The notes under the pieces were generated by a model. The model searched no databases. It was not told the DNA's origin and saw nothing but the letters and a program-made list of their open reading frames with translations. DNA of 64,000 bases, from the sequence record MH791414.1; one strand, written 5' to 3'. Below are positions 2,482 to 8,818 of the stretch, one piece after another; position 1 is the first letter of the stretch; every line of letters begins with the position of its first letter. A program made the position numbers and the translations under genes.

Positions 2482-2567
2482 GGGTGTGTAACCGGTAATT
2501 GGTAGCCGCACGGTCTGTAAAACCGTTCCCTCTGGGACTGATGGTTCGAGTCCATCCACACCCACCA
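2482..2567 (+). tRNA. tRNA-Tyr(GTA)
   Basis: ACGGT-CTGTAAA-ACCGT, variable arm, ACCA. Confidence 0.95.
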
Positions 2568-2568
2568 C

Positions 2569-2644
2569 GCTGAATTAGCTCATCTGGTAGAGCGACGGTC
2601 TTGTAATCCGTAGGTGGTCCGTTCGAGTCGGACATTCAGCACCA
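2569..2644 (+). tRNA. tRNA-Thr(TGT)
   Basis: GCTGAAT/ATTCAGC acceptor, loop CTTGTAA, ACCA. Confidence 0.92.
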
Positions 2645-2650
2645 ATTTCC

Positions 2651-2727
2651 GGTCCCTTAGCTCAGTTGGTTAGAGCAACCGACTCATAATCGGTGGGTCG
2701 CTGGTTCGAGTCCAGCAGGGATCACCA
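2651..2727 (+). tRNA. tRNA-Ile2/Met(CAT)
   Basis: Loop CTCATAA; body resembles enterobacterial lysidine tRNA-Ile2 as recalled. Confidence 0.9.
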
Positions 2728-2748
2728 GATTTAAAAGGAAAATAATTT

Positions 2749-2988
2749 GTGAAAATGGAATATGTCGGTGATAATAGATTGAAATCGTTTCACGTAAATT
2801 CACCGGATGAATTATTCTCATATAAGCATATTGGATTTTCGAAATGGGATCTTGAAATATTATCATCTAAGATATCAAAAATAGATGTGGTTTATTGGTC
2901 TGATACCCCACCTTGGATAAAAGAAGATAAAATATCTTGGAGTATTGACAAAGATCGTCTGGTTGATTACATTAATAAGCTGTTATGA
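2749..2988 (+). CDS. hypothetical protein within tRNA cluster
   Basis: 79-aa ORF with AAGGA SD. Confidence 0.65.
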   Translation: MKMEYVGDNRLKSFHVNSPDELFSYKHIGFSKWDLEILSSKISKIDVVYWSDTPPWIKEDKISWSIDKDRLVDYINKLL

Positions 2989-3080
2989 GTCCCACAGCTT
3001 TCAAAATTATCAAATGGGATGTTGATGCGCGTATGTAGCCGGGTTATAATGACCAAGATTCATGAAGGGTAAAAGACTAC

Positions 3081-3088
3081 CCTAAATA
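3081..3088 (+). promoter_or_regulatory. late promoter CCTAAATA
   Basis: Immediately upstream of initiator tRNA. Confidence 0.7.
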
Positions 3089-3092
3089 TCTG

Positions 3093-3166
3093 TGCGGGGT
3101 CGAGAAGTGGTGTCTCATGGGACTCATTATCCCACTACGCAGGTTCGAATCCTGCCTCCGCTTCCA
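3093..3166 (+). tRNA. tRNA-fMet(CAT)
   Basis: 1:72 mismatch and three G:C pairs in anticodon stem (TGGGA/TCCCA), which are initiator identity elements. Confidence 0.88.
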
Positions 3167-3170
3167 AATT

Positions 3171-3242
3171 CGGTGTGTAACTCAGTCGGTTAGAGGACGG
3201 GCAACTTGCCCGTTGGTCGCGGGTTCGAGTCCCGTCACACCA
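3171..3242 (+). pseudogene. tRNA mimic with collapsed anticodon loop
   Basis: Normal D- and T-arms; anticodon arm ACGGGC-AACTT-GCCCGT (6 bp stem, 5-nt loop, no U33). Confidence 0.6.
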
Positions 3243-3268
3243 AATAGTTTTATTATGAGGTTTTTATT

Positions 3269-3463
3269 ATGTCTTCAATTAAAAATATAGTTGAAAACTG
3301 GACTGTTGGTGAAGGGATCATTCATTGGAAGAATAAAACTTCTAGTTTAGTGGTTTTTGGATTTGCTCCAAACGGAGAACCTGCCTTTAAGTTCAAAGGA
3401 AAAGAAAGATTGACATCAATACGTCAGGTAGAAAAATCTATTTTATCTGCAAAATTGATTTAA
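3269..3463 (+). CDS. hypothetical protein
   Basis: 64-aa ORF, GAGG SD. Confidence 0.65.
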   Translation: MSSIKNIVENWTVGEGIIHWKNKTSSLVVFGFAPNGEPAFKFKGKERLTSIRQVEKSILSAKLI

Positions 3464-3469
3464 TAAAAT

Positions 3470-3545
3470 GCGTCGTTAGTTCAGTTGGTAGAACACCGGA
3501 CTTTTAATCCGGGGGTCACTGGTTCGAGCCCAGTACGGCGTACCA
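3470..3545 (+). tRNA. tRNA-Lys(TTT)
   Basis: CCGGA-CTTTTAA-TCCGG, ACCA. Confidence 0.95.
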
Positions 3546-3551
3546 AATTTC

Positions 3552-3628
3552 GGGGGATTAGCTCAGTTGGAATGAGCGACTGGTTTGCAACCAGTAGGTC
3601 ATCGGTTCGAGCCCGATATCCTCCACCA
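3552..3628 (+). tRNA. tRNA-Ala(TGC)
   Basis: ACTGG-TTTGCAA-CCAGT; G3:U70 identity pair. Confidence 0.95.
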
Positions 3629-3639
3629 AATAATTTCAA

Positions 3640-3714
3640 GCCTGTATGGTGTTAATGGTAACATGTCGTCCTTCCAAGTCGAAGTTCCGGGTTCGAGTCC
3701 CGATTCAGGCTCCA
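3640..3714 (+). tRNA. tRNA-Gly(TCC)
   Basis: Loop CTTCCAA, U73 discriminator, CCA. Confidence 0.9.
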
Positions 3715-3828
3715 AAAGAAATAAGGCATAGGGCTCTAGATTCCTAGTCAGTTTCTCACCCCTAGTTGCTGCATATACCCCGACTTTTCCGTGACTGGTG
3801 TAAAAAGGTTTGGGTAAACGTATTAAAT

Positions 3829-3907
3829 CCGCGTGTAGGCTAGTCAGGTCGAGGTCGTCTGGTTTGGGACCAGAAAGTCGGGTGTTCGAATCACCCCACG
3901 CGGACCA
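3829..3907 (+). tRNA. tRNA-Pro(TGG)
   Basis: TCTGG-TTTGGGA-CCAGA, ACCA. Confidence 0.93.
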
Positions 3908-4558
3908 AATTCTATAGAGTGAGTAACCGGTTGCAAACGGACTCATAAAGTCGTCAAACCTTAGTACCCTCTCCCGAAAATATCGGTGATGCGACTAAAA
4001 TGAAGGCGCAAATTGAGAATTTATTTTCACAAAGCTATTGCTTCTGGATTTAAATTCTCAGATACTCTTAATTTGAGCGGGTTACTGGTCATCCCCTCGT
4101 AAAACAATATCAAAATCTTAGTGGTTCGGTCGCGACATATGAACCAAGAGTATCTGAGAATTTAAGTTTAAAAGAACTTCCTTCGGGAATGGGGTACATA
4201 GACGGGGCGCACCCCATTGTACCGACGCTTTAAGTAGCCCGTGCGAGAGACTAAAAAGCTGACCCTACCCTCTCCCAGTAATGGTGATGGAGCTTCCTTT
4301 CCTGTAATAAGGTTCCAGTCCGTGACGGGTAAAAGGTTACATAAGGAGAATTGCTTGTGAATGACCACTGATTCAAGCCAACACATAAGCGCGTCTATCA
4401 TGACGATAAATAGGCTTAGATTCCCGTAAGGGCCTAAGCGTAAAAGTAACGAGCAAGACCGTCTTACAGGCGTAGCCCATTGGGGTGATGATGTTTGTAT
4501 GTTTGGGCTCGGGTAGCCAATGCTATTAAGTCTGGTGATGGTGCGACCAGATCTTTTC
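3908..4558 (+). ncRNA. candidate large structured ncRNA (about 650 nt, ROOL/GOLLD-like class)
   Basis: No sense ORF; perfect 20-bp helix, UUCG and GNRA tetraloop hairpins, many further stems; between tRNA-Pro and tRNA-Trp. Confidence 0.7.
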
Positions 4559-4559
4559 T

Positions 4560-4634
4560 AGGGTGTTAGTATAGCGGTATTATGCCGGATTCCAAATCCG
4601 TGCGACTGGGGTTCGAATCCTCAACACCCTGCCA
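4560..4634 (+). tRNA. tRNA-Trp(CCA)
   Basis: AGGGTGT/ACACCCT acceptor, loop TTCCAAA, GCCA. Confidence 0.92.
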
Positions 4635-4657
4635 AATTTTAATGAGATGATTATATT

Positions 4658-4876
4658 ATGAAAATTGTTCGTAAGAATGGTGATGAAATTATTTTTCATA
4701 CACAGGTTAGTAAATTCTATGGCGTTATTAAAGAAGGTGTTCTTTATGTTGGTACATCTCCGACAACTAAACCATCTGTAGAAAGTTCTGTGTTTATTAT
4801 AAATATGGATGATGTAGCTTATTTCCATGAAAGAAATGAAAACCAATTTGATTACTATTTCGCCCCTAATAAGTAA
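4658..4876 (+). CDS. hypothetical protein
   Basis: 72-aa ORF between tRNAs. Confidence 0.65.
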   Translation: MKIVRKNGDEIIFHTQVSKFYGVIKEGVLYVGTSPTTKPSVESSVFIINMDDVAYFHERNENQFDYYFAPNK

Positions 4877-4934
4877 TTTTGGATGATCTTGTTACTTTGT
4901 ACAAAGAAGCGTAAGTAACGGAAAAACCGTCTTA

Positions 4935-5010
4935 GGTGGATTAGCTCAGTAGGTAGAGCAAACGACCGATAATCGTTTGGTCGCTGGTTCAAGTCCAGCA
5001 TTCACCACCA
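4935..5010 (+). tRNA. tRNA-Ile(GAT)
   Basis: AACGA-CCGATAA-TCGTT (C at position 33), ACCA. Confidence 0.88.
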
Positions 5011-5016
5011 AATTCA

Positions 5017-5104
5017 GGAGAAGTGGATGAGCGGTTTAAATCGCTCCCCTGCTAAGGGAGTAAACCGAAAGGTTTCGAGAGTTCGAATCTCTCTTTCTCC
5101 GCCA
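5017..5104 (+). tRNA. tRNA-Ser(GCT)
   Basis: CTCCC-CTGCTAA-GGGAG, long variable arm, GCCA. Confidence 0.95.
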
Positions 5105-5110
5105 AATATA

Positions 5111-5187
5111 GAGGATGTAGTAGAGTTGGTTAATATTCCAGCCTGTCACGTTGGAGATCGCGGGTTCGAGCCCCGTCATCCTCGCCA
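5111..5187 (+). tRNA. tRNA-Asp(GTC)
   Basis: CCAGC-CTGTCAC-GTTGG, GCCA. Confidence 0.95.
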
Positions 5188-5243
5188 AATTAGGCCCATC
5201 TCAGCCTTTAATGAGACGTAGAAACTAACCAAAAGGAAATGAT

Positions 5244-5495
5244 ATGAGTCGAACAATTCGCCGTCGTAGTTTTTCAAAGGCACTTGCGGAAATCTGGGAT
5301 CATGTTGTAATTACAAGAGAACAGAAATTGAGAAAGACAAAAACATTGGATAGTGAAGCAAAGGACCGTCAAAATCAAATTCGTCGTTCAGAAACGGTTC
5401 GCCTGAAGAAAGATATCATGGAAGGAAAAGAAGTGTTTCCAGCCAATGATAAATATTCGAAGGTAAAGGTTAACTCTGGTTATCAATATTGTTGA
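5244..5495 (+). CDS. small basic protein (MSRTIRRR N-terminus)
   Basis: 83 aa, AAGGA SD, Arg/Lys rich. Confidence 0.75.
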   Translation: MSRTIRRRSFSKALAEIWDHVVITREQKLRKTKTLDSEAKDRQNQIRRSETVRLKKDIMEGKEVFPANDKYSKVKVNSGYQYC

Positions 5496-5770
5496 GGTTT
5501 TTATGTTCCGTGAGGAAGATTGGTTTTAAGTGTATAGTCCCGCATAAAACGGGACAACGGCGTCAAACTTTAACGAGCCGAGGGGAAAGGTGATCCCCTG
5601 TTAAAGTCACTAGACGAAAAGAATCCATATAGACCCCATCATATGGATCCGTTTATAGGGGATGGAATGACCCACCATTTATATAAGGGTTGGCGTCCGA
5701 CACCAAGGGCGTCTTTTTGGAAAAAGGGCATACGTTACCATTTGGCTGTGGGCGTATGCCCTTTTTCTAT
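5494..5770 (+). ncRNA. candidate structured ncRNA (about 270 nt) ending in a 14-bp hairpin
   Basis: At least six helices found by eye; no ORF longer than 8 codons seen from the SD-linked ATG. Confidence 0.55.
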
Positions 5771-5771
5771 C

Positions 5772-5779
5772 CCTAAATA
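5772..5779 (+). promoter_or_regulatory. late promoter CCTAAATA
   Basis: Intergenic copy. Confidence 0.65.
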
Positions 5780-5876
5780 TATTTGTAGAGATAATATCGA
5801 ATAGACTCACCCCAAAATATGACAGTGAAGCATTCTTGATTATCTTTTTATAATAATAAAAACGTGTATACCATTT

Positions 5877-5900
5877 GGGCTAGGGAACTAGCCCTTTATT
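5877..5900 (+). terminator. hairpin/terminator GGGCTAG-GGAA-CTAGCCC-TTTATT
   Basis: 7-bp stem, GNRA loop, T-rich tail. Confidence 0.5.
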
Positions 5901-5915
5901 GATTTGGAGATATTT

Positions 5916-6125
5916 ATGGCTAAAAGTATTCACGAAAAGTCTCATGCTAGAGAAGGTCGTGGTGGCGCTAATACCGGTAATGAAAAATGGTATAAATCGC
6001 CGTTGTGGGATAAAGTTGAAGCAAAACAAATCCCTCTGGATGCAAAACCGGATGCTCTTTTTAAAGAGAAAGAAGGTGAAGATATTAAAGAAAAGCAAAA
6101 GCGGGCCTTTATGTTTGCTTATTAA
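5916..6125 (+). CDS. hypothetical protein
   Basis: GGAG SD before ATG 5916 (track start 5904). Confidence 0.7.
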   Translation: MAKSIHEKSHAREGRGGANTGNEKWYKSPLWDKVEAKQIPLDAKPDALFKEKEGEDIKEKQKRAFMFAY

Positions 6126-6140
6126 AAAGGAAAATAAGAT

Positions 6141-6677
6141 ATGTTAGTATCGAAATTAGATCTTTGTAGAGATCTTTATGACCAAGTTTGTAAAATGGCA
6201 TTGTGTATTCATTCTGATATAAAGGACGACCAAAATAGATTGGTCTTCCCCCCAGTTGAATATCAACAAGAATTTGCGTGTTTGTCTATTGATTTAGGAC
6301 GACAGACTGGAAAAACAACTTTTATCGTTGAGTCACTTTTAAAAAATCCAAATTCCATTGCTATAGTAAATAAAGAGATTTGGGTTAGAGAATATGAACA
6401 TATAGAACCGAGTTTGAAGGGTCGTGTATTCAGTCCATCTGGATTTATTAATAAGTTTTATTCTCGCGGATCTACTGAACATGTTGTTTTTGGTAGGAAT
6501 ATACCAAAACATGACATTGTGTTTTTAGATGAGCCATATTTCTTTTGTACACAAGGTCAAATGAATTACACAAATCGGGAGCACTGTACGTATCCGTCCA
6601 AAATGTCCCTAAAATCTCTAATTTTATATGCATCATACCAGTTTGGTGCAGTTAACGTAATGGTTGGAATGAAATGA
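6141..6677 (+). CDS. P-loop NTPase-like protein
   Basis: Walker A-like GRQTGKTT and Walker B-like VFLDE. Confidence 0.65.
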   Translation: MLVSKLDLCRDLYDQVCKMALCIHSDIKDDQNRLVFPPVEYQQEFACLSIDLGRQTGKTTFIVESLLKNPNSIAIVNKEIWVREYEHIEPSLKGRVFSPSGFINKFYSRGSTEHVVFGRNIPKHDIVFLDEPYFFCTQGQMNYTNREHCTYPSKMSLKSLILYASYQFGAVNVMVGMK

Positions 6678-7075
6678 AATTAATAATGAAGTATGATATG
6701 AAACGGATCTCGGATAAAGTATCGAAATTCGTTACATTGGGTTTGGTATCAGTTGCTCGAATCCATTATCTACATCTTACTACAAATAGTTACCCTAGAC
6801 ACATGGCTCTGGACGAGTTCTATAAAGAGTTCCCAGATGGTTACTTAGATAGGGTCGCAGAGAGTGCTTTAGCAAACACTCTAACCCTAACCTATACCGA
6901 ACCTCAACTATCCAATATGGATGCGTTAGAAGTGCTTCAGGGGCTGTATAATGAAGGGGTTGAACTTCTGGAACTACTGGAAGGTAAGAGGGAATTCAAA
7001 GGTACGGTGAATTGTATTGAGGATTCTTTAGAATTCATTAAACTTGTGATATACAAAGTGAAAAGATTCAACTAA
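6674..7075 (+). CDS. ferritin/Dps-like four-helix protein
   Basis: HYLHLTTNSYPRHMALDEFY...LDRVAE motif typical of phage ferritin-like proteins. Confidence 0.6.
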   Translation: MKLIMKYDMKRISDKVSKFVTLGLVSVARIHYLHLTTNSYPRHMALDEFYKEFPDGYLDRVAESALANTLTLTYTEPQLSNMDALEVLQGLYNEGVELLELLEGKREFKGTVNCIEDSLEFIKLVIYKVKRFN

Positions 7076-7099
7076 AAAGGCTCCTTCGGGAGCCTTTTT
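7074..7099 (+). terminator. rho-independent terminator GGCTCC-TTCG-GGAGCC-T5
   Basis: UUCG hairpin plus T tract. Confidence 0.9.
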
Positions 7100-7105
7100 G
7101 TTTTC

Positions 7106-7113
7106 CCTAAATA
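7106..7113 (+). promoter_or_regulatory. late promoter CCTAAATA
   Basis: Between terminator and kinase gene. Confidence 0.75.
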
Positions 7114-7148
7114 CCAAGAGGTATAAATTTAATTTAAGGAAACTAAAA

Positions 7149-8000
7149 ATGAAACGATTTAAAGATTTCGTACTTGAAGAAAAGCTGATGGTCTTCGGTA
7201 AGAAAGCATACCCTCAATTTAATAACGTATTGATTCTAGCCGGTGGTGCTGCTTCTGGTAAAGGTTTTGTTACTCAAAAGCTTATTGGTATGGAAGGTAT
7301 TACACTCGATGTGGATAGAGTAAAAGAGTTGGCAATGGCTTCAACTCGTCTTGCTGCACGTATTAAGAAAGAAACTGGTCATGATATTAAATCCATGAAC
7401 CTGAAGAATCCTGAAGATGTTGCAACCTTACATAATCTGCTTGCCTCTGAATTCAAAGTAACAAAGAACATGGATAAACGTGTATTTAATGGGGTTCTTG
7501 CTGCTCCATCAGATCGTAAACCGAATCTTATCTTTGATGTGACTTTAAAAGAAATGGGTAAGATGGCTCAAATTGCTAAACAAATCCAAGATCTTGGATA
7601 TGATAAAAAGAATATTCATATTTGTTGGGTAATGAATGACGTTCATGTTGCTATCGAACAGAATAAAACAAGATCTAGAACGGTTCCTTTGGAGATCTTG
7701 ATTGGTACACATGAAGGTGCGGCACTAACTTTCAAAACCTTAATGGCTATGGGTGAAGGCGCAAGGAATTATGCAGATGGTGATTGGTATATATCTTTTA
7801 ACAAAGCAGGTATTGATACCAATTGGAAAACCTCTGGTAAAGGTGGTGGATATATGATGGATGCGAATTACATGAAGGTTAAATCTCAAGGTAAAGCCCC
7901 AATGAAAGCATCTGAACTCGATCAAGCGGTAATTAAAAAGATTACTGATTACACACCTAACCCTGAAACTTGGGGTATGTTGATGAAACCTAACAAGTAA
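7149..8000 (+). CDS. P-loop nucleotide kinase (zeta-toxin/AAA_33-like) with capsid-targeting-like leader
   Basis: GGAASGKG Walker A, LIFDVT; AAGGA SD; begins MKRFKDFVLEE. Confidence 0.75.
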   Translation: MKRFKDFVLEEKLMVFGKKAYPQFNNVLILAGGAASGKGFVTQKLIGMEGITLDVDRVKELAMASTRLAARIKKETGHDIKSMNLKNPEDVATLHNLLASEFKVTKNMDKRVFNGVLAAPSDRKPNLIFDVTLKEMGKMAQIAKQIQDLGYDKKNIHICWVMNDVHVAIEQNKTRSRTVPLEILIGTHEGAALTFKTLMAMGEGARNYADGDWYISFNKAGIDTNWKTSGKGGGYMMDANYMKVKSQGKAPMKASELDQAVIKKITDYTPNPETWGMLMKPNK

Positions 8001-8041
8001 ATAGTAATGGGGAATTCTCCCCATTTTTGGAGAAAAATAAA

Positions 8042-8818
8042 ATGGCTATTGTTTATTACAAAGCAGGTGAAGCGGTTGCGATGTCTTCAACCAATTCCGA
8101 AGTTGGAACCACATATGTGTGGAAAAAAGGCACTAGTGTCATTTCCGGTCAGACAGGGAAAGATTTTTCTATTTCTGCGATGGCTGAAGGTGATATCGGC
8201 GTTTATACTGTTGAAGCAACCCCAACGGCTGGGGATCCGGTTACAGATACATTCTCGATTGGTTTGGTATCCCTGAATGATGGTGGTTTGACCCCATCAA
8301 CCGTACAAGTCACAGAAGGTCAGGCTATCAATTTGACCACTAATTTTTCTGTGTCTTTTAATCCTACCCCAGATTCTACACAGGCTAGTGATTATTCGCT
8401 TCAATACCAATGGAAAAAGCAAACTACCAACGTACCTAGCGCGACAAGTAAAGATTTGACTATTGCAACTTCTGTGGTTGCTGACTCGGGGACTTATAAT
8501 ATTCAAGTAAACTTGATGAAAAGTTCTTCTGTCTACGTTACATCAACTAGAAAGGTTGCTGACGTTACAGTTTCCGCAGTTGTTCCAGCTCCCTTATGGT
8601 ACGTCATTCCACTTGAATATCGTAATACTAGCTTTACTTGGATTGGATATTGGGTACTTGATGAAATCATGGCAACACCCGGTTGGTTTGCTGACCATAG
8701 CACAATGAAATATAAGGATGAAATTGCGCTTATCGTATCCGCATTCAACGAATACGGTGATTGTTTGCTTATGGAATCTCGAAATGGACGGATCCTTAAA
8801 GTTAGTGATCTGAAATAA
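8042..8818 (+). CDS. hoc: Hoc head outer capsid protein with Ig domains
   Basis: Ig-like repeats plus C-terminal capsid-binding domain with WIGYWVLDEI and ESRNG motifs as in T4 Hoc. Confidence 0.88.
   Translation: MAIVYYKAGEAVAMSSTNSEVGTTYVWKKGTSVISGQTGKDFSISAMAEGDIGVYTVEATPTAGDPVTDTFSIGLVSLNDGGLTPSTVQVTEGQAINLTTNFSVSFNPTPDSTQASDYSLQYQWKKQTTNVPSATSKDLTIATSVVADSGTYNIQVNLMKSSSVYVTSTRKVADVTVSAVVPAPLWYVIPLEYRNTSFTWIGYWVLDEIMATPGWFADHSTMKYKDEIALIVSAFNEYGDCLLMESRNGRILKVSDLK

Follow-up and report, generated by a model that had tools for sequence, protein, structure and literature searches.

A putative family of compact, terminator-ended RNAs at the distal end of the tRNA cluster in T4-like Aeromonas phages

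Introduction

What does a T4-like phage encode in the gap that follows the last block of its tRNA genes? The question is raised by Aswh_1 (Straboviridae, Emmerichvirinae, Ishigurovirus), a T4-like phage of Aeromonas, of which a stretch of 64,000 nucleotides (nt) from sequence record MH791414.1, hereafter the window, was analysed. ARAGORN predicts 18 tRNA genes in the window, all on the + strand, between positions 812 and 5187. The tRNA-Asp gene is followed by an open reading frame (ORF) of 83 amino acids (aa), by the region studied here and then by small ORFs that lead to the late genes. The region thus lies 3' of the last tRNA block, at the distal end of the 18-tRNA cluster and on the same strand, and the gap after the 83-aa ORF carries no annotated feature in any record inspected, be it that of Aswh_1 or those of its relatives. 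A preliminary description, made from the letters of the window, regarded positions 5494-5770 as either a discrete RNA of about 270 nt or a translation-coupled regulatory element that ends the tRNA operon, with an eight-codon minigene at its 5' end.

Comparison with relatives indicates that positions 5537-5768 of the + strand are a genuine structured RNA family, single-copy and strand-specific. The RNA matches no described family of Rfam 15 and is a new family in a known genomic niche, with a narrow distribution. We propose, with a probability of about one half, that it is an undescribed compact non-coding RNA of about 230 nt that would be stable, ended by a terminator and the last product of the tRNA operon.

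A covarying fold beyond the tRNA genes

The + strand of positions 5494-5775 folds at -101 kcal/mol, compared with -77.3 +/- 5.1 kcal/mol in dinucleotide shuffles (z = -4.7). Covariation carries the structure given in Table 1. Seven distinct versions of the RNA are available, from four or more lineages: Aswh_1/ZPAH1, CC2, the AS-zj group, 65/avDM6 and a further three known from metagenomes. All seven retain every one of the nine helices; they were registered by hand, helix by helix, over 45 pairs and 315 cells. Compensatory double changes are found in 30 of the 45 pairs and one-sided variation in none, while non-standard cells number two out of 315. The model-made alignment A8, in which the register of P4 is imperfect, contains 95.0% standard pairs versus 73.3 +/- 2.2% in shuffles; 22 of its 40 pairs show double changes, not one of 500 shuffles reaches any of five measures, and slid controls give 32-47%. 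RNAalifold, run on four sequences, finds compensatory changes in 27 of 69 pairs. Given 13 G.U cells versus 2 A.C cells, the + strand is the folded one.

These comparisons also decide which parts of the preliminary description stand. The stems GTCCCG/CGGGAC, ACTTTAAC/GTTAAAGT, AGGGGA/TCCCCT and ATCCATAT/ATATGGAT, which correspond to P0, P3a, P3b and P4, are all present, and relatives keep the hairpins through compensatory changes; the 14-bp terminal stem is present as well and is followed by a T run. A helix drawn between AGACG and CGTCT (5612/5710) has no counterpart in relatives, where GACG at 5613-5616 pairs with the invariant CGUC at 5561-5564. Likewise, a pseudoknot of CCATC in the P4 loop with GATGG (5661-5665) is not conserved: GATGG is mostly the 5' strand of P5, and the conserved partners are instead CCCC at 5634-5637 and GGGG at 5658-5661. 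The comparison of homologues that the description had called for finds the helices conserved and covarying, and for this reason the structured element holds. The observation is confirmed and its interpretation partly supported, in that a structured non-coding RNA of about 230-270 nt is retained, together with the end of the tRNA operon, which an intrinsic terminator closes, whereas translation coupling as a general property is not.

Table 1. Features at the distal end of the tRNA cluster of Aswh_1 (positions of the window).
Feature	Position	Strand	Remarks
Upstream ORF, 83 aa, basic, T4 gp55.5-like	5244-5495	+	phrog_1774, E 6e-10 to 3e-24; weak DUF5499 match
Shine-Dalgarno sequence GAGG(T) (5494-5498) and minigene MFREEDWF, stop TAA (5503-5529)	5494-5529	+	five nucleotide versions, listed below
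Minigene, version of the window	5503-5529	+	ATG TTC CGT GAG GAA GAT TGG TTT TAA
Minigene, further version			as in the window, with GAA for GAG at the fourth codon
Minigene, further version			ATG ATC CGC GAA GAG GAT TGG TTT TAA
Minigene, further version			ATG TTC AGA GAA GAA GAC TGG TTT TAA
Minigene, further version			ATG TAC AGA GAA GAA AAC GAA GGC TGG TTT TAA
A/U-rich single-stranded leader UGGUUUUAAGUGUAUA	5520-5536	+	directly 5' of P0
Whole structured RNA, about 230 nt	5537-5768	+	nine helices: P0, P1, P2, P3a, P3b, P4, P5, P6, terminator hairpin
P0 hairpin GUCCCG/CGGGAC, 7-nt loop	5537-5542/5550-5555 (span 5537-5555)	+	compensatory in 4/5 pairs
5' domain (P1-P4)	5556-5653	+	covariation; RNAalifold agrees
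P1	5556-5560/5649-5653	+	compensatory in 1/5 pairs
P2, invariant CGUC/GACG	5561-5564/5613-5616	+	compensatory in 0/4 pairs
P3a ACTTTAAC/GTTAAAGT	5567-5574/5600-5607	+	compensatory in 5/7 pairs
P3 bulge GAGCCG, 6 nt	5575-5580	+	
P3b AGGGGA/TCCCCT	5581-5586/5594-5599	+	compensatory in 5/6 pairs
P3b loop AAGGUGA	5587-5593	+	
Junction CACUA	5608-5612	+	
Junction AAAAGA	5617-5622	+	
P4 ATCCATAT/ATATGGAT, loop 5631-5640	5623-5630/5641-5648	+	compensatory in 7/7 pairs
PK1 (likely): P4-loop CCCC with GGGG directly 5' of P5	5634-5637/5658-5661	+	one compensatory position
P5	5662-5665/5675-5678	+	compensatory in 2/4 pairs
PK2 (well supported): P5-loop GACCC with GGGUU, H-type pseudoknot with P5	5669-5673/5687-5691 (span 5662-5691)	+	two compensatory positions
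P6 hairpin GGCGUCC/GGGCGUC, loop GACACCAA 5699-5706	5692-5713	+	compensatory in 6/7 pairs
PK3 (possible): P3b-loop GGUG with P6-loop CACC, kissing	5589-5592/P6 loop	+	complementary, both invariant in 7/7 sequences
PK4 (likely): P3-bulge AGCCG with terminator apical loop UGGCU	5576-5580/5743-5747	+	one compensatory position
Intrinsic terminator: 14-bp stem, inner stem CCAU/GUGG, U run	5721-5768 (stem within 5721-5766)	+	
Terminator apical loop UUGGCU, 6 nt	5742-5747	+	
CTAAATAT box, candidate T4-type late promoter	5772-5779	+	3' of the terminator

About 45 unpaired or junction nucleotides are invariant, including CGGCGUCAAAC, GUCACUAGACGAAAA, UGAYC, AAGG.UU and GACACC. The strand that runs from J3/2 into P2 reads AAGUCACUAGACGAAAAG. 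J2/3 (AA), CACUA, AAAA(G/A)A, GGUGA, UGAYC, AAGG.UU and GACACC/UCACC are kept unpaired while the helices that surround them are rewritten, as in P5, whose strands read AUGG/CCAU, GUGG/CCAC, GUAG/CUAC or CUGG/CCAG. Invariant unpaired nucleotides amid rewritten helices are the signature of a specific three-dimensional surface. The nucleotide identity between lineages is 63-75% in the core of the RNA and 56-80% in the neighbouring coding regions, which shows that the fold and the junctions are conserved rather than the overall sequence.

Both ends of the RNA have features of their own. Directly upstream of P0, AAGUGUA(N) is kept in Aswh_1, 65, CC2, L027 and L047, lineages devoid of the minigene included, and is not found in L024/L031 (numbers with L denote the loci and contigs compared). 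The A/U-rich leader of which it is part may be an entry site for an endonuclease of the RNase E type. At the 3' end, the G+C-rich hairpin of Aswh_1 with its U run on the transcribed strand (5721-5766 plus TTTTT) has the make-up of an intrinsic terminator. A long hairpin whose apical loop measures 6 nt is present in all lineages, along with a U run that is short or weak in 65 and L047.

Pseudoknots and tertiary pairings

Four additional pairings, all found by eye, would tie the helices together. PK2 is a well supported pairing on comparative grounds and is of the classical H-type. Its versions GACCC/GGGUU, GACCU/AGGUU and GAUCC/GGAUU covary at two positions on two different branches; the consensus is GAYCY in the P5 loop and RGRUU directly 5' of P6, and the loop lengths fit a classical H-type pseudoknot. 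P5, PK2 and P6 together form an H-type pseudoknot followed by a hairpin, 56 nt long (5658-5713), at the border between an RNA gene and ordinary genes. Another partner considered for the P5 loop, GUCAC of J3/2, was dropped, its GU being already part of P3a.

PK1 and PK4 are likely pairings with moderate support from the compared sequences. PK1 joins CCYC of the P4 loop to GRGG; it reads CCCC/GGGG in Aswh_1, CCUC/GAGG in CC2, AS-zj and 65 and CCUU/GAGG in L047, and is reduced to CCC/GGG in L024/L031. PK4 would dock the apical loop of the terminator into the bulge of P3, and the loop and bulge versions are UUGGCU/AGCCG, UUGACU/AGUCA and UUGGCC/AGCCA. If this docking is real, the terminator hairpin belongs to the fold, and it is the terminated transcript that functions. 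PK3, a kissing pair between the loops of P3b and P6, is possible; covariation cannot speak on it, because GGUG and CACC are invariant.

Members and distribution of the family

Relatives were collected in several ways. ZPAH1 is 99.7% identical to Aswh_1 over positions 5190-5920 of the window. In a blastn search of 50,697 phage records conservation is limited to positions 5555-5706, which match 14 records of CC2-like Aeromonas phages (Ceceduovirus) at about 75% identity; the conserved block is unannotated in all of them. An exact 16-mer scan of IMG/VR added phage 65, its seven other matches lacking flanking similarity and being due to chance. A word search with the protein of the upstream ORF, combined with contig look-up, led to the lineages L024/L025, L026-L031 and L027, a search with the downstream ORF to L047/L048, and a pattern scan of JGI metagenomes to the 65-like L036. 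Two two-block patterns run against IMG/VR and the JGI metagenomes returned only 65, CC2, AS-zj and one 65-like contig, and a protein-pattern scan only the three known phages.

R1, a covariance model derived from four sequences, scores lineages that it had not seen at 93-172 bits and finds exactly one copy per genome in Aswh_1, CC2 and 65. With positive controls that worked, R1 found no match in the whole genomes of Aeh1, 44RR2.8t, KVP40, T4 and FBB1. A degenerate pattern of the P5-P6 module, run against 2.9 million IMG/VR contigs, returned this family only, apart from six matches that fail R1. A scan of 8 kb against Rfam 15 with E up to 1 gave no match to the core; when the element alone was searched in three lineages with E raised to 10, inconsistent weak matches appeared, mostly to the terminator hairpin. 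The titles and abstracts returned by a full-text literature search mention no such RNA in Aeromonas T4-like phages. As far as seen in these sequence collections, the family appears to be confined to Emmerichvirinae, which comprise two genera, and to close uncultured relatives.

The eight-codon minigene

The minigene and its Shine-Dalgarno (SD) sequence are where the preliminary description had placed them. They are present in Aswh_1/ZPAH1, 65, avDM6, the 65-like contigs L036 and L043-L046 and in L027, whose P0 resembles that of CC2. The five nucleotide versions, spread over Aswh_1, L036/L043-L046, avDM6, 65 and L027, encode the peptides MFREEDWF, MIREEDWF and MYREENEGWF. Most of the differences are synonymous and affect the codons of Arg (CGT/CGC/AGA), Glu and Asp, the non-synonymous ones being those at residue 2 (F, I or Y) and the replacement of Asp by Gly in phage 65. 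The one indel, of 6 nt, is in frame, and the SD lies 7-11 nt upstream in every version. Mostly synonymous changes, an in-frame indel and a kept SD indicate selection on the peptide M(F/I/Y)REE(D/NEG)WF, and the minigene is therefore best described as a conserved ORF that is probably translated and forms a unit separate from the RNA. The possibility that it is the split-off C-terminus of the upstream gp55.5-like protein was rejected, as all members of that protein family end in Y(S/C).

CC2/AS-zj (which has only the remnant GAT-TTTTAA), L024-L031 and L047 are devoid of the minigene. The RNA persists in all three of them and is therefore independent of the minigene, and a translation-coupled mechanism cannot be general. 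What all lineages share is a translated ORF that ends 6-15 nt before P0. The peptide has single Trp and Phe codons and no run of regulatory codons, and the fixed fold puts about 190 nt between its stop codon and the terminator.

MFREEDWF consists of an acidic stretch followed by an aromatic residue at the end. Its tail recalls MDFDDDIPF, the C-terminal tip of bacterial SSB.

A stand-alone product and its alternatives

Based on the fold and its position, we propose that early or middle promoters further upstream would drive the RNA in one transcript with the tRNAs and the gp55.5-like mRNA, and that intrinsic termination would set its 3' end. It would then be freed or trimmed at the A/U-rich stretch before P0 (UUUUAAGUGUA) and would accumulate as a stable species guarded by P0 and the terminator, in the manner of the stable RNAs C and D of T4 and of the bacterial small RNAs that derive from 3' untranslated regions. 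Such an RNA would work in trans, its invariant junction and loop nucleotides being offered to a protein or a small ligand.

A stand-alone product is preferred over a switch for one gene because the downstream gene differs between lineages, because the terminator of Aswh_1, L024 and L031 has a late-promoter-like box after it, and because inspection of the lineages showed no antiterminator pairing in common. In CC2, 65 and L047, the terminator is directly followed by an ORF of phrog_16872 (61-67 aa, two transmembrane helices; L003 2737-2922, L016 3051-3254 and L047 2750-2935). This ORF is missing from Aswh_1/ZPAH1 (window 5770-5915) and from the L024-L031 lineage, in both of which a homologue of CC2_363 comes straight after the terminator. 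The box reads CTAAATA(A/T) in Aswh_1, L024 and L031 (CTAAATAA or CTAAATAT in L024/L031), and CTAAATAT is possibly a T4-type late promoter for the genes beyond. No antiterminator pairing common to the five lineages inspected was seen; small hairpins that bridge P6 and the terminator occur only in Aswh_1 and CC2, and are absent in 65, L047 and L024.

Several points weigh against this proposal. The single compensatory events of PK1, PK2 (position 5) and PK4 share one phylogenetic split, that between Aswh_1 plus L024-L031 and the remaining lineages; it is because of these single events on the same split, and because the pairings were found by eye, that the support for PK1 and PK4 is moderate. The public runs that contain the stretch are DNA or contigs; those labelled as RNA are wastewater contigs, probably DNA, and are silent on the ends and the abundance of the RNA: four wastewater libraries labelled RNA-Seq, compared with positions 2500-8400 of the window (5,901 letters), yielded mainly cross-matches of tRNAs, plus three short contigs that lie over or beside the RNA (one each in X8, X11 and X12; X13 duplicates X12). 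The 5' end, the promoter and the processing site are putative, as are the role of the RNA and its partner in trans. Furthermore, the SD and ATG of the small membrane protein gene come within about 30 nt after the terminator in CC2, 65 and L047, and no clear promoter is seen, a layout that resembles a cis-regulatory leader.

That layout is the main reason why a cis-acting leader has to be weighed, although we consider it rather unlikely. In a riboswitch- or attenuator-like manner, the fold would sense a ligand, a protein or the ribosomes that finish the minigene or the gp55.5-like ORF, and would thereby set termination and read-through into the gene of the small membrane protein and beyond. The conserved domain has the size of an aptamer and is followed by an intrinsic terminator and then by an SD and ATG within 30-40 nt (CC2, 65, L047 and L024), the short U run of 65 and L047 and the translated ORF that stops 6-15 nt before P0 in every lineage would suit such a device, and the terminator could form more or less readily depending on the docking of its loop into the P3 bulge. 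However, the gene to be controlled is not constant (the phrog_16872 ORF versus the CC2_363 homologue), no mutually exclusive antiterminator pairing common to the lineages was seen on inspection, the minigene is missing in three RNA-bearing lineages and contains no run of regulatory codons, no riboswitch of Rfam matches even at E up to 10, and the terminator loop itself appears to be part of the covarying fold.

More speculatively, and in our view unlikely, the RNA may be the founding member of a new functional class, either a self-processing ribozyme or a sensor of a ligand or protein, with the docked terminator as an integral part of the active fold and the octapeptide MFREEDWF as its functional partner or as a separate micro-effector. 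Such a peptide could, by analogy, compete for the host proteins that bind SSB.

The RNA may also be inactive in itself and form a purely protective or insulating 3' end that stabilises the gp55.5-like mRNA and the tRNA precursors against 3' exonucleases and insulates the late genes. Its place at the 3' end of the operon, its strong terminator and the late-promoter-like box after it all fit this explanation, which is nevertheless quite unlikely: a simple hairpin would suffice for protection, whereas about 45 invariant unpaired positions amid rewritten helices and specific tertiary pairings argue for selection on a precise three-dimensional surface.

It is more doubtful still that the RNA is catalytic and excises itself from the transcript of the tRNA operon, for example near P0 or P1, so that the cut would fix both where the RNA begins and where the gp55.5-like mRNA stops. 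This reading survives because the fold is complex: the architecture, with multiple pseudoknots and about 45 invariant unpaired or junction nucleotides, is of ribozyme grade, and the transcript in which it lies must be cut into many products. No ribozyme family of Rfam 15 matches it, however, and T4-type tRNA operons are already processed by the RNase P and RNase E of the host.

Finally, chance structure or a mis-called coding region can be dismissed almost entirely, for the 53-aa ORF (5643-5804) that is open in Aswh_1 is closed in CC2, 65 and other lineages, indels are not multiples of three, substitutions preserve pairs, the folding energy departs from that of shuffles by the z of -4.7 given above, and covariation in both the hand-registered set and A8 refutes it. 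The CUG/ATG frame is open in Aswh_1 and closed in CC2, and because frames are not conserved, the RNA is not coding.

Comparison with known systems

The closest parallel in position is found in T4, where two genes for small RNAs other than tRNAs, rnaC (species 1, 139 nt) and rnaD (species 2, 119 nt), lie at the distal end of the tRNA cluster and on the same strand, that is, at the equivalent place after the last tRNA block. To our knowledge, no function has been assigned to RNAs C and D since the 1970s. Homology to them was rejected: MAFFT found no block of similarity, and R1 was negative in the tRNA region of T4 as in its whole genome. T4 RNA C ends in a tRNA-like T arm (CCGGGTTCGAATCCCGG), whereas the Aswh_1 RNA has no T-loop or acceptor mimic; within 5494-5770, neither ARAGORN nor the tRNA model of Rfam detects a tRNA-like domain and no GTTCRA loop is seen. 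Unlike RNAs C and D, the Aswh_1 RNA has a terminator of its own and an ORF between it and the last tRNA, and it is about twice as long and multiply pseudoknotted.

Small RNAs (sRNAs) derived from the 3' untranslated regions (3'-UTRs) of bacterial mRNAs share the intrinsic terminator of the mRNA and are released by RNase E, and most of them are short, with a linear seed and an Hfq module. The Aswh_1 RNA resembles them in following a stop codon directly, in ending at the intrinsic terminator of the mRNA and in having an A/U-rich strand before its 5' hairpin, but differs in its closed fold with several pseudoknots, which offers no obvious free seed, and in that its processing is inferred. With terminating riboswitches and attenuators it shares the order of a folded domain or short SD-led ORF, an intrinsic terminator and a gene; unlike terminating riboswitches, it shows no conserved antiterminator in the five lineages inspected, has no constant downstream gene and no Rfam match, and has a terminator loop that appears to take part in the fold. 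Leader-peptide attenuators differ further, since here the leader ORF is not found in all members, being dispensable in three lineages, and there is neither a run of regulatory codons nor a set of overlapping 1:2/2:3/3:4 hairpins.

Some words are also shared with the early leaders of T7. The A1 early leader of T7 has AAGUCGCACGAAAAA where the Aswh_1 RNA has AAGUCACUAGACGAAAAG, and the T7 early leaders (T7 400-1000; locus positions 99-230 and 351-440) share the words AAGUCGCACGAAAAA, GCGUCAACC and, exactly, AAAGGUGAU with the Aswh_1 RNA. The topology of the T7 leader is different, with a hairpin loop and a local stem, and R1 with its filters off found no match in it. Kinship is neither shown nor excluded by these comparisons.

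Gene neighbourhood

The upstream ORF is part of the context of the RNA and lies outside it. Its homologue in phiEa21-4 is annotated as "similar to T4 gp55.5". R1 did not find the RNA beside the homologues of this ORF in Felix-O1-like Erwinia and Salmonella phages, in Aeromonas phages 1233 and MQM1 or in Erwinia phage FBB1, where what comes after the gp55.5-like gene is a plain terminator or the next ORF. Because the homologues occur in these phages without the RNA, the link between RNA and gp55.5-like gene is positional only, and a ribonucleoprotein of the RNA with the basic upstream protein was rejected on the same ground.

Lineages that have the phrog_16872 ORF also have the U.A versions of three tertiary pairs and a near-identical terminator, which suggests that terminator and ORF were inherited as one block.

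Several other features of the tRNA cluster were noted. A shared word, GCGTAA(A)AGTAACG...ACCGTCTTA..AGG, precedes two tRNA blocks (tRNA-Trp and tRNA-Ile) at 4433-4476 and 4902-4945 and may mark a processing site or a promoter of the tRNA operon. GGTGAT is repeated in apparent loops of non-coding spacers of the cluster (3985, 4283, 4484 and 4534) and in the P3b loop (5589). GTCAAAC recurs at 3953, within GTCGTCAAAC...GGTGAT (3934-4049), a segment with a weak colinear likeness to P2-P3. This segment was considered as a paralogue and rejected, the local alignment being weak and judged not significant and R1 being blind to it; nor did R1 find any paralogue in the other structured gap of the window, 3908-4558.

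In metagenomic relatives, homing-endonuclease-like ORFs (T5orf172/MUG113 and HNH_3) are inserted in the tRNA cluster, upstream of the gp55.5-like gene (L025 492-1109, L026 1118-1813 and L047 427-1095), in the manner of segB in T4; the ORFs differ between these relatives. The stretch of about 740 nt that separates tRNA-Asp from the gp55.5-like ORF in phage 65 (L016 1758-2500) is unannotated and holds a copy of the conserved block of window positions 4410-4555 and an ORF that is annotated in avDM6 and CC2. Two ARAGORN calls in the window are unusual, a tRNA-Phe with anticodon AAA (1947-2024) and a tRNA-Ser with anticodon ACT (3170-3244). No alternative genetic code was used for the translations.

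Implications

An eight-codon gene under purifying selection would be among the shortest conserved phage ORFs. The RNA that follows it, with a length of about 230 nt, an H-type pseudoknot, additional tertiary pairings and about 45 invariant unpaired nucleotides, falls into the complexity range of ribozymes, riboswitches and ribonucleoprotein scaffolds. It is also a tractable system: the locus is single-copy, phages 65, CC2 and Aswh_1 are in culture, and nature provides variants that have or lack the minigene and the downstream ORF. In another phage subfamily, the place that RNAs C and D hold in the tRNA operon of T4 is taken by an RNA that is unrelated to them and far more elaborate. This suggests that the "extra" RNAs of tRNA operons may be a recurrent and selected trait of large lytic phages rather than relics.

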